Below, one piece after another: positions 22,188-24,103 of a DNA stretch of 64,000 nucleotides (positions are counted from its first letter, which is position 1; the number at the start of each line of letters is the position of its first letter). A program made the translations under genes and the position numbers. The notes under the pieces were generated by a model that saw only the letters and a program-made list of their open reading frames with translations, had not been told where the DNA came from and did not search any database. This stretch comes from Camelus dromedarius (taxonomy: Eukaryota): assembly GCF_036321535.1 (NCBI RefSeq), contig NC_087472.1, positions 2,108,001-2,172,000 of the forward strand. Direction: 5' to 3'.

Positions 22188-23522
22188 ATGGCCTTGTCAC
22201 TGTTGGAGGATTGGTGCAAGGGGATGGACCTGGACCCCAGGAAGGCCCTGCTGATCGTGGGGATCCCTGTGGAGTGTAGTGAGGCTGAAATTAAGGAGAC
22301 CTTGAAGGCAGGCTTACAGCCCTTGTGCAACTACAGGGTGCTGGGCAGAATGTTCAGAAGGGAAGACAATGCTAAGGCAGTTTTCATTGAATTAGCTGAC
22401 ACCATCAATTATGCTATGATGCCCAGTCAGATACTAGGAAAGGGAGGTGCCTGGGAAGTGGTGGTGAAACCCCGTAGCCCGGATGATGAATTTCTCCATA
22501 GACTGAACTACTTCCTGAAAGACGAGGGCCGGAGAATGGTCGATGTGGTCAAGACCCTGGGGTACACCACCCCCACCGAGGGCATAGAGCCAGACGGCTT
22601 GGCTCAAGTCAAGGCACCCGTTTGGCAGCCTGTGACAGAAAGCATGTGGTACCGGAAACTGAAAGTGTTTTCAGGGAGCGCTAGCCCCAGCCCGGGCGAA
22701 GAGAACTTTGAAGCCTGGCTGGAGCAGGTCACTGAGATGATGCAGATGTGGCAAGTGTCTGAGGCAGAGAAGAGGCGCCGTTTGGTGGAGAGCTTGCGCG
22801 GCTCTGCCCTGTCCGTCATGCGGGTGCTCCAGGCCAATGATGACGCCATGACTGTGGAGCAGTGCCTGGACGCCCTGAAGCAGATCTTCGGGAATAAAGA
22901 GGACTATAGAACCTCACAGTTTAAGTTCCTCCAGACCCTTCAGAAGTCTGGGGAGAAAATCTCGGGGTTTTTGCTGCGCTTAGAGCCCCTGCTGCAGAGA
23001 GCCGTGCGGCACAGCCCCTTGTCAGTGAGAAGCACAGACATGATTCGCCTGAAACACATCCTGGCTCGGGCCTCCATGACTGCTGCCCTCCGGGGCAAGC
23101 TAGAGCTCCTGGATCAGCGAGGGTGCGCTCCCACCTTCCTGGAGTTAATGAAGCTCATTCGGGATGAAGAGGAGTGGGAGACCACCATGGCTGTGACCAA
23201 GGAGGGGCAGAAGCAAGTAGGAAGGGGCCGCAAGGCACCGGGCAGGCACGTAGTGGCTGAGGCCACTGTCCCAACACCTCAGGTCATCCTACAGGCAGGG
23301 CCATTTAGTGAGAAGAGCGCTCAGACCATCCAGAAAGGGGCTGTCCCGACACTGAAGCGCAGGCGACTGTCCTGCTGCTACAGTACCGGGGAGGAAGGCC
23401 CCAGCCAGGGGGCGTGTCCTCGGGCCAAGAACCAACCTTCACCAAAGCAGAGTCCTCAGCTTGCAGCAGAAGAGTCGGGAAACGGGACAGGGGCTGGGGC
23501 TATGAGCCATCCCGAGCCCTAG
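22188..23522 (+). CDS. PNMA5: Paraneoplastic antigen-like protein 5 (Ty3/gypsy Gag-derived), 444 aa
   Basis: Intact single-exon ORF with good Kozak (gcgATGG). [27 protein letters not shown]...[11 protein letters not shown]...[13 protein letters not shown]...[10 protein letters not shown] closely matches the human PNMA5 sequence as I recall it. Confidence 0.96.
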
Positions 23523-23536
23523 GAAGCTTAGGCTCA
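23477..23536 (+). promoter_or_regulatory. -1 programmed ribosomal frameshift signal (G_GGA_AAC plus H-type pseudoknot)
   Basis: Heptamer 23477-23483 in X_XXY_YYZ phase, 6-7 nt spacer. Stem 1 is 23490-23499 with 23510-23520. Stem 2 is UGAGCC 23503-23508 with GGCUCA 23531-23536. Confidence 0.8.
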
Positions 23537-24103
23537 ACAGATCCAGGCATCCTCTCCCCTTGCAGGCAATGGAAAATTTTTAATGAGGGAAAGGGGCAGT
23601 GCACAAAAATAGCAAGGGGCTTGAGTGGGGAAGAGGGGCAGGGCAGCCAGGCCCAGGCCGAGCCCCGTCGGCCTCCACCAGCCGGAAAGGACTCCATCCA
23701 AGCCAAAACCAGCTCAGGAAGGTACTGGCGACGCAAACAGAGGGCCGCCACATCCAGCACACAGGCTGCCCAAGCCTCAGACAGAGACCCCAGTGCAGCA
23801 GAGGCTGAAGAGGGTGCGGCCAAGGGCTCTGGCCTCGGCCCCATCTTCTGGCCACCCCCAAACACCCACCCCGTGGGCTCTCAGCTAATGATGCTGACAG
23901 GCCCCCAGGCCACGCGGGGCCTAGAGGAGCCTTCCCCGGGGCCATCCCTGCCAGAAGGAGCCAGCACCGGTGAGGAAGAGCTGCGTGGCAGAGGGGCGAT
24001 GCCCCGGAGAGGGGTTCGTAGGGTCCAGCCCATCTTCAGGATCATCTACACTGCTCCAGGGGGGCCCCAGGAAGGCAGCACCCTGGAGCCTCTGCGCCAG
24101 TGA
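23483..24103 (+). CDS. PNMA5 -1 transframe extension (206 aa; predicted fusion 638 aa)
   Basis: The -1 frame is open from the slippery site to TGA 24101-24103 (part of track ORF 23414..24103). Translation is inferred, not observed. Confidence 0.55.

Follow-up and report, generated by a model that had tools for sequence, protein, structure and literature searches.

PNMA proteins form capsid-like particles. Conserved programmed -1 ribosomal frameshifting is accepted for the mammalian cellular genes PNMA3, PNMA5, PEG10, and RTL3, which are the accepted cases named in PMC5009743, PMC11299033, PMC11011659, and bioRxiv 10.1101/513333. PNMA3 (Ma3) frameshifts with an efficiency of about 20% at a classical slippery heptamer followed by an H-type pseudoknot, PNMA5 (Ma5) is apparently similar, and neither has a Pol domain (PMC5009743). 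The human Ma5 signal is credited to Wills et al. 2006, as cited in PMC5009743, and the Ma3, Ma5, and PEG10 signals have been assayed with reporters in two human cell lines (bioRxiv 10.1101/513333). For PNMA5, an efficiency of 4.2-4.9% is given after Khan et al. 2022, as cited in PMC11299033; the latter paper also reports that in placentals the heptamer is conserved and synonymous variation is reduced, that the -1 frame product is fully disordered, and that there is positive selection in primates. Here we describe the PNMA5 locus in a window of 64,000 nucleotides (nt) of the dromedary genome (Camelus dromedarius, assembly GCF_036321535.1, contig NC_087472.1, positions 2,108,001 to 2,172,000, forward strand), where the zero-frame open reading frame (ORF; hereafter RF1) is overlapped by a -1 frame ORF (RF2) behind such a signal.

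The RF1 protein had its best database relative in PNMA5 of Vicugna pacos (alpaca), with 98% identity, and its best 87 matches were either PNMA5-named proteins from many mammalian orders or nameless ones, with identities of 55-98% across the query or a part of it. PNMA3 proteins appeared in the same list from 47% identity downward. Judged from this ranking, the gene is orthologous to PNMA5 and not to a different paralogue. The closest PDB relatives of the protein were the PNMA2 capsid proteins 8uyo and 8rb3, and the surrounding DNA is GC-rich. The identification as PNMA5 in a preliminary description, made from the sequence without database searches, was thus upheld by the Pfam PNMA_N and PNMA domains, the alpaca match, and the homology to PNMA2 capsid structures.

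We consider it very probable that the locus contains PNMA5 in its camelid form, orthologous to that of other mammals and derived by domestication of a metaviral (Ty3/gypsy-type) Gag-like capsid gene, together with the programmed -1 frameshift signal of its family. The camelid signal is the orthologue of a described and curated element and is as such already known. For PNMA5 the signal is not new: the preliminary description had itself pointed to the reports on human, and a 2024 paper described its conservation in mammals (PMC11299033). What the preliminary description had said of the human Ma3 and Ma5 signals and of the PEG10 heptamer agrees with PMC5009743, PMC11299033, and PMC11011659. The coordinates of all features are collected in Table 1.

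Table 1. Features of the PNMA5 locus and of the downstream MAGE-type array, in window coordinates
Feature	Position	Strand	Basis
PNMA5 zero-frame ORF (RF1), Gag-derived protein	22188-23522	+	ORF list; 444 codons plus TAG
PNMA N-terminal RRM-like domain, residues 1-92	22188-22463	+	Pfam PF20846 (PNMA_N), E 1.5e-43
PNMA capsid-like domain, residues 161-321	22668-23150	+	Pfam PF14893 (PNMA), E 1.7e-72
Low-complexity, basic C-terminal tail of RF1	23151-23476	+	Isoelectric point (pI) 9.6; 71% disorder-prone residues
Complete -1 frameshift signal (heptamer, spacer, predicted pseudoknot)	23477-23536	+	Rfam RF01093 match
Slippery heptamer GGGAAAC	23477-23483	+	Phase computed; G_GGA_AAC
6-nt spacer	23484-23489	+	Sequence; length identical in all orthologues
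Stem 1, 5' arm	23490-23499	+	Fold of 23490-23520, -16.2 kcal/mol
Stem 2, 5' arm, inside the stem 1 loop	23503-23508	+	Invariant in all PNMA5 sequences including mouse
Stem 1, 3' arm	23510-23520	+	Last base is the T of the RF1 stop
RF1 stop codon TAG	23520-23522	+	At the 3' edge of stem 1
Stem 2, 3' arm	23531-23536	+	Invariant in 10/10 sequences, including mouse PNMA5 and otter PNMA3
-1 frame ORF (RF2), 206 codons plus TGA, reached only by frameshift	23483-24103	+	Open 23483-24100; TGA 24101-24103
Conserved C-terminal segment of RF2, residues 171-206, core about 176-204	23993-24100	+	dN/dS, identity, shared tails
MAGE-type ORF copies	37598-38737, 44862-46001, 52317-53456, 59214-60353		Copies differ by 0-2 nt in 1140

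Anatomy and conservation of the frameshift signal

The heptamer is of the X_XXY_YYZ type and lies in zero-frame phase, its first G being the third base of codon 430 (codons 430-432, S430 G431 N432), and the 6-nt spacer falls within the 5-9 nt range for a stimulatory structure. Stem 1 combines nine standard pairs, one G.U among them, with one internal G.G mismatch, and stem 2 consists of six Watson-Crick pairs. Direct reading and scripts confirmed every coordinate previously given for the heptamer, its phase, and the stems. The spacer, put at 6-7 nt in the preliminary description, is 6 nt, the G bulge or mismatch allowed for in stem 1 is the G.G mismatch, and the zero-frame stop, placed at the stem 1 boundary, contributes its T as the last base of that stem. 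The open -1 frame of 206 codons and the product of 638 residues (432 + 206) were likewise reproduced.

A second TAG in the RF1 frame, at 23529-23531, lies three codons past the first and touches the 3' arm of stem 2. It aligns with the RF1 stop position of PNMA3, so that the PNMA5 stop comes 9 nt earlier. Another copy of GGGAAAC, at 24315, sits past the ends of RF1 and RF2 and is irrelevant.

The region from heptamer to stem 2 matched Rfam family RF01093 ("Ma3 gene ribosomal frameshift signal") along the entire model (positions 1-60 of 60), with 74 bits and an E-value of 2e-13 against a gathering score of 35 bits, and the same family matched all of the orthologues fetched. PNMA5 loci were compared from alpaca, warthog, zebra, a molossid bat, mouse lemur, grey squirrel, tenrec, porpoise, and mouse; the eight non-mouse orthologues represent five orders, with Afrotheria covered by tenrec alone and Xenarthra by none. 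All eight carry the identical heptamer in the same phase, and in the nine heptamer-bearing PNMA5 sequences the RF1 stop begins exactly 36 nt after it (9/9). The -1 ORF extends for 202-221 codons in each of the eight, while the third frame shuts after 6 codons. Across the RF2 span the -1 frame contains no stops, compared with 4-13 in each other forward frame; base composition predicts 4.5-7, and the probability of the frame staying open is 0.001-0.01 per species. The preliminary description had named conservation of the -1 ORF across species as a check on its proposal, and this check came out in its favour. The signal region aligned without gaps in nine species, with both stems pairable in 99.2% of cells compared with at most 60% when the partners were slid; pairing was retained in 98.6% of cells for stem 1 and in 98.3% for stem 2, PNMA3 included.

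None of the parts, taken singly, goes beyond chance. GGGAAAC occurs 4 times in the 64-kb window against 14.5 expected and is therefore not enriched, ORFs of more than 200 codons are common around PNMA5 on both strands of this GC-rich DNA, and nested fold energies are unremarkable. Taken together, the parts are far beyond chance. A chance ORF beside a chance heptamer in GC-rich DNA is refuted by the exact conservation of every element among orthologues over about 100 million years, by the Rfam match (E 2e-13), and by the homology of RF2 to the -1 ORF of PNMA3, and we give it practically no credence.

The -1 frame product and its C-terminal segment

RF2 overlaps RF1, is open, and is conserved. 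It belongs to no Pfam or NCBIfam family that we could find and had no PDB relative even at an E-value of 10 in a profile search; none of the enzymes of a Gag-Pol arrangement (protease, reverse transcriptase, or integrase) was detected in the -1 frame with Pfam, NCBIfam, or the PDB profile. A profile built from eight RF2 sequences and searched against 1.84 billion proteins returned 29 matches, and those examined were -1 frame ORFs or gene models of PNMA5 and PNMA3. As no relatives other than these turned up in the searches, the results speak neither for nor against a Pol origin. The composition is basic and disorder-prone (pI 9.8), and AlphaFold2 run on the eight-sequence alignment gave a mean predicted local distance difference test score (pLDDT) of 49 with no secondary structure. 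The window RF2 and the -1 ORF of otter PNMA3 share 50% identity over 215 residues (E 8.5e-62), a likeness comparable to that between the Gag parts of the two paralogues (45%). On these comparisons, RF2 is a real and old coding unit. Part of the -1 frame has a 99% identical counterpart in a hypothetical protein of Camelus ferus, which together with the alpaca match marks the window as camelid DNA.

Sequence constraint varied along the locus, as measured by mean pairwise nucleotide identity among the nine species and by the median pairwise ratio of nonsynonymous to synonymous substitution rates (dN/dS). Identity was mostly 0.78-0.90 in the RF1 core, with one dip to 0.68, and 0.66-0.70 in the RF1 tail; it peaked at 0.80 at the frameshift signal, against 0.66-0.70 before and 0.60 after, and was 0.60-0.67 in the middle of RF2, 0.75-0.82 at its end, and 0.30-0.35 in the first windows past its stop. 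The dN/dS was 0.23 across 22188-23150 (the RF1 core, made up of the N-terminal domain, the linker, and the capsid-like domain), 0.46 in the RF1 tail, 0.84 in the first ~170 codons of RF2, and 0.39 in its last 36 codons, which are also the only part of RF2 with a coding-type excess of third-position change. Gap runs came in multiples of three in 17/23 cases inside RF2 compared with 14/42 downstream. Most RF2 residues from about 176 to 204 were common to 72-100% of 25 distinct tails, a set that takes in PNMA3 and the rodent proteins with the tail in frame. The last ~30-36 residues of RF2 are thus under purifying selection, and in our reading the frame has to stay open and its end is what counts, with the middle serving as a spacer. 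Tyrosine-based (Yxx-hydrophobic) or LC3-interacting region (LIR)-type patterns can be read in the conserved tail, but they are frequent by chance and we make no claim for them.

The preliminary description had portrayed the extension as largely disordered and devoid of protease or reverse transcriptase motifs. The null results in Pfam, NCBIfam, and PDB and the pLDDT of 49 bear this out, with one correction: the extension is not featureless, its last ~30-36 residues being conserved. It had also expected standard annotation to miss the extension. Among 96 annotated PNMA5 and PNMA3 proteins, just four carry the RF2 tail in frame, mouse and Molossus among them, and the other 92 end at RF1.

In mouse, Pnma5 is a single continuous ORF of 618 codons (L004:1501-3357), in which the final 74 residues share 55% identity with the end of the window RF2. 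The mouse copy of the signal (L004:2757-2816) is weakened, scoring 54 bits compared with 74-78, and the exact heptamer is gone. Since RF1 and the tail stand in one reading frame, the long form is constitutive and the only product in mouse, which argues that the long form is a working protein. A mole-rat PNMA5 model of 595 residues, judged from the protein, looks similar to that of mouse.

The annotation of Molossus nigricans PNMA5 (L005:1501-3422) raises the alternative that RF2 is expressed without frameshifting, either from its own initiation codon or through a splice bridging the frames. This model has 590 residues over 1922 nt and is no straight translation of the DNA, so that an intron of ~149 nt joining both frames is implied, and there are Met codons inside RF2 that might serve for initiation. 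The first ATG of the -1 frame, however, comes only at RF2 residue 136 and its Met is not conserved, the frame opens just 23 codons 5' of the heptamer, and Molossus itself keeps the heptamer, its phase, and a -1 ORF of 209 codons. Because the bat retains all of these, its bridging intron is probably a gene-model device, and we regard expression of RF2 by either route as very unlikely. A camel hypothetical protein (P0121) and a whale protein (P0126) are chimeric models containing pieces of RF2. Genome annotation thus treats PNMA5 poorly, with 92/96 models ending at RF1 and at least one joining the frames by an apparent intron.

Under programmed frameshifting, most ribosomes would read RF1 to the TAG at 23520 and release the 444-residue protein, while a minority would pause when the pseudoknot, which begins 6 nt after the heptamer, reaches the mRNA entrance. 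The tRNAs paired with GGA in the P site and AAC in the A site would slip back by one base to GGG and AAA, and the -1 frame would be read for 206 further codons, giving a long form of 638 residues. From 23400 to 25613 there is neither AATAAA nor ATTAAA, and RF2 is therefore expected to be part of the mRNA. Frameshifting in this camelid is our expectation from the conserved signal, and its occurrence at ~4-5% is taken from the literature on the human orthologue. In the long form, the capsid-forming protein would be extended by a tether, basic and disordered, with a conserved peptide of ~30 residues at its end. The logic is likely that of Gag and Gag-Pol, in which frameshifting would fix a low ratio of tagged to untagged subunits.

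Several observations weigh against this account. In human, ribosome footprints on PNMA5 past the RF1 stop are weak and 'less clear' (PMC11299033), and the region past the frameshift has been judged poorly conserved and of unclear relevance (PMC11011659). Most of RF2 is near-neutral, with a dN/dS of 0.84 and no codon periodicity. Nested minimum free energy (MFE) folds of 23477-23560 (z -0.47) and of 23484-23536 (z -0.37) were no better than those of shuffled sequences. The stems are near-invariant among PNMA5 orthologues, with zero compensatory changes within PNMA5; when mouse PNMA5 and otter PNMA3 were added, two stem 1 pairs changed on both sides and still paired, but these changes trace to otter PNMA3 and squirrel and were matched by 22/500 shuffles. 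Finally, stem 1 of the window, with its G.G mismatch, folds more weakly than that of otter PNMA3 (-16.2 compared with -19.6 kcal/mol). Nested MFE folding is uninformative for a pseudoknot in GC-rich sequence, and pseudoknots are not scored by the tools used; for this reason the weight was placed on the covariance model and the conservation of the signal. The pseudoknot is accordingly presented as a predicted fold; its support comes from conservation and from earlier publications on Ma3, and covariation in these sequences does not add to it. The weaker stem 1 fits the lower efficiency given for PNMA5 in the literature, without proving it.

The near-neutral bulk of RF2 (dN/dS 0.84, no third-position excess) also speaks for an account in which the frameshift happens but the long product has no function, being a tolerated relic or a mere diversion of ribosomes from RF1. 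The lack of a domain, of a predicted structure, and of relatives outside PNMA3 and PNMA5 fits such a product, as do the published doubts (PMC11011659). It is harder to reconcile with a frame of ~200 codons kept open in eight lineages where other frames hold 4-13 stops, with indels that favour multiples of three, with the dN/dS of 0.39 in the last 36 codons and a drop in conservation exactly at the stop, and with the survival of the tail in PNMA3 and in the fused mouse ORF. We therefore consider a functionless product unlikely, though less so than expression of RF2 without frameshifting.

Returning to a functional long form, we tentatively propose, at somewhat less than even confidence, that RF2, rather than being a featureless remnant of Pol, is a disordered tether whose real cargo is the ~30-residue end peptide (residues ~176-204; 24008-24094), and that frameshifting sets the dose of peptide-bearing subunits in PNMA particles or complexes. 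This peptide is common to PNMA5 and PNMA3 and is in frame in mouse. The long form would presumably join particles, and its tail bind a partner. In the literature accounts we found, in a search that was not exhaustive, RF2 is called either fully disordered or poorly conserved, and a conserved tail goes unmentioned. Three points were absent from the literature consulted, namely the constraint on the peptide at the C-terminus of RF2, the presence of that peptide in PNMA3 as well, and the comparison that the single ORF of mouse naturally provides; they are modest and descriptive.

Other features of the window

Downstream of PNMA5, between 37598 and 60353, lie four tandem ORFs of 379 codons with MAGE_N and MAGE homology domains, spaced ~6.9-7.5 kb apart, and blocks of N repeat at corresponding places in each unit. 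The copies reflect either a very recent segmental duplication or a collapse or expansion in the assembly. Each unit also holds a minus-strand ORF of 228-414 codons; no Pfam family was found for those at 35607-36617 and 50141-51385, and no NCBIfam family for the one at 50141-51385.

Several overlapping ORFs of 146-240 codons occupy both strands of 23970-24774, where GC content is 64% and a purine-rich repeat of the GGAGGA type is found around 24330-24400; these ORFs look like compositional artefacts. Two further GC-rich islands (7229-8103 and 14403-15367; 58-64% GC) contain ORFs of 229-274 codons, and the largest of these, at 7279-8103 and 14567-15367, matched no Pfam or NCBIfam family.

Comparison with known systems

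The camelid copy is one more orthologue and introduces no new principle. With human PNMA5 (Ma5) it shares the orthologous gene and the same heptamer; going by published descriptions, a pseudoknot of the same kind is predicted there, and the -1 product is likewise disordered and free of Pol domains. It differs in species only, and this likeness is drawn from the papers and the Rfam model rather than from the human sequence.

PNMA3 (Ma3, RF01093) has the heptamer, the 6-nt spacer, stem 1, and stem 2 in register, and its -1 ORF of 218 codons is 50% identical to the window RF2. Unlike the window sequence, PNMA3 of otter (Lutra lutra; L010:2838-2897) has a perfect 11-bp helix for stem 1 (-19.6 kcal/mol), carries the heptamer GGGAAAT instead of GGGAAAC, and places the RF1 stop 45 nt rather than 36 nt past the heptamer, at the position of the second in-frame TAG of the window.

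PEG10 and rodent RTL3 are also domesticated metaviral gag genes that use GGGAAAC and make a minority long form (PMC11299033, PMC11011659). Their -1 frames carry a recognisable and strongly constrained protease domain, whereas that of PNMA5 has no detectable Pol-type domain. In retroviral and metaviral gag-pol elements, a heptamer and a downstream pseudoknot similarly fix a low ratio of extended to plain capsid protein. PNMA5 lacks the protease, reverse transcriptase, integrase, long terminal repeats, and mobility of such elements; it is a host gene present in a single copy, and its X-linked locus is conserved.

Mouse Pnma5 agrees with the window sequence in its RF1 domains and in the conserved tail at the C-terminus. 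It differs in that the exact heptamer is gone, both parts stand in one frame, and the long form is the sole product. A constrained tail that is shared by PNMA3 and PNMA5 and constitutive in mouse offers a concrete handle on the purpose of the long isoform.

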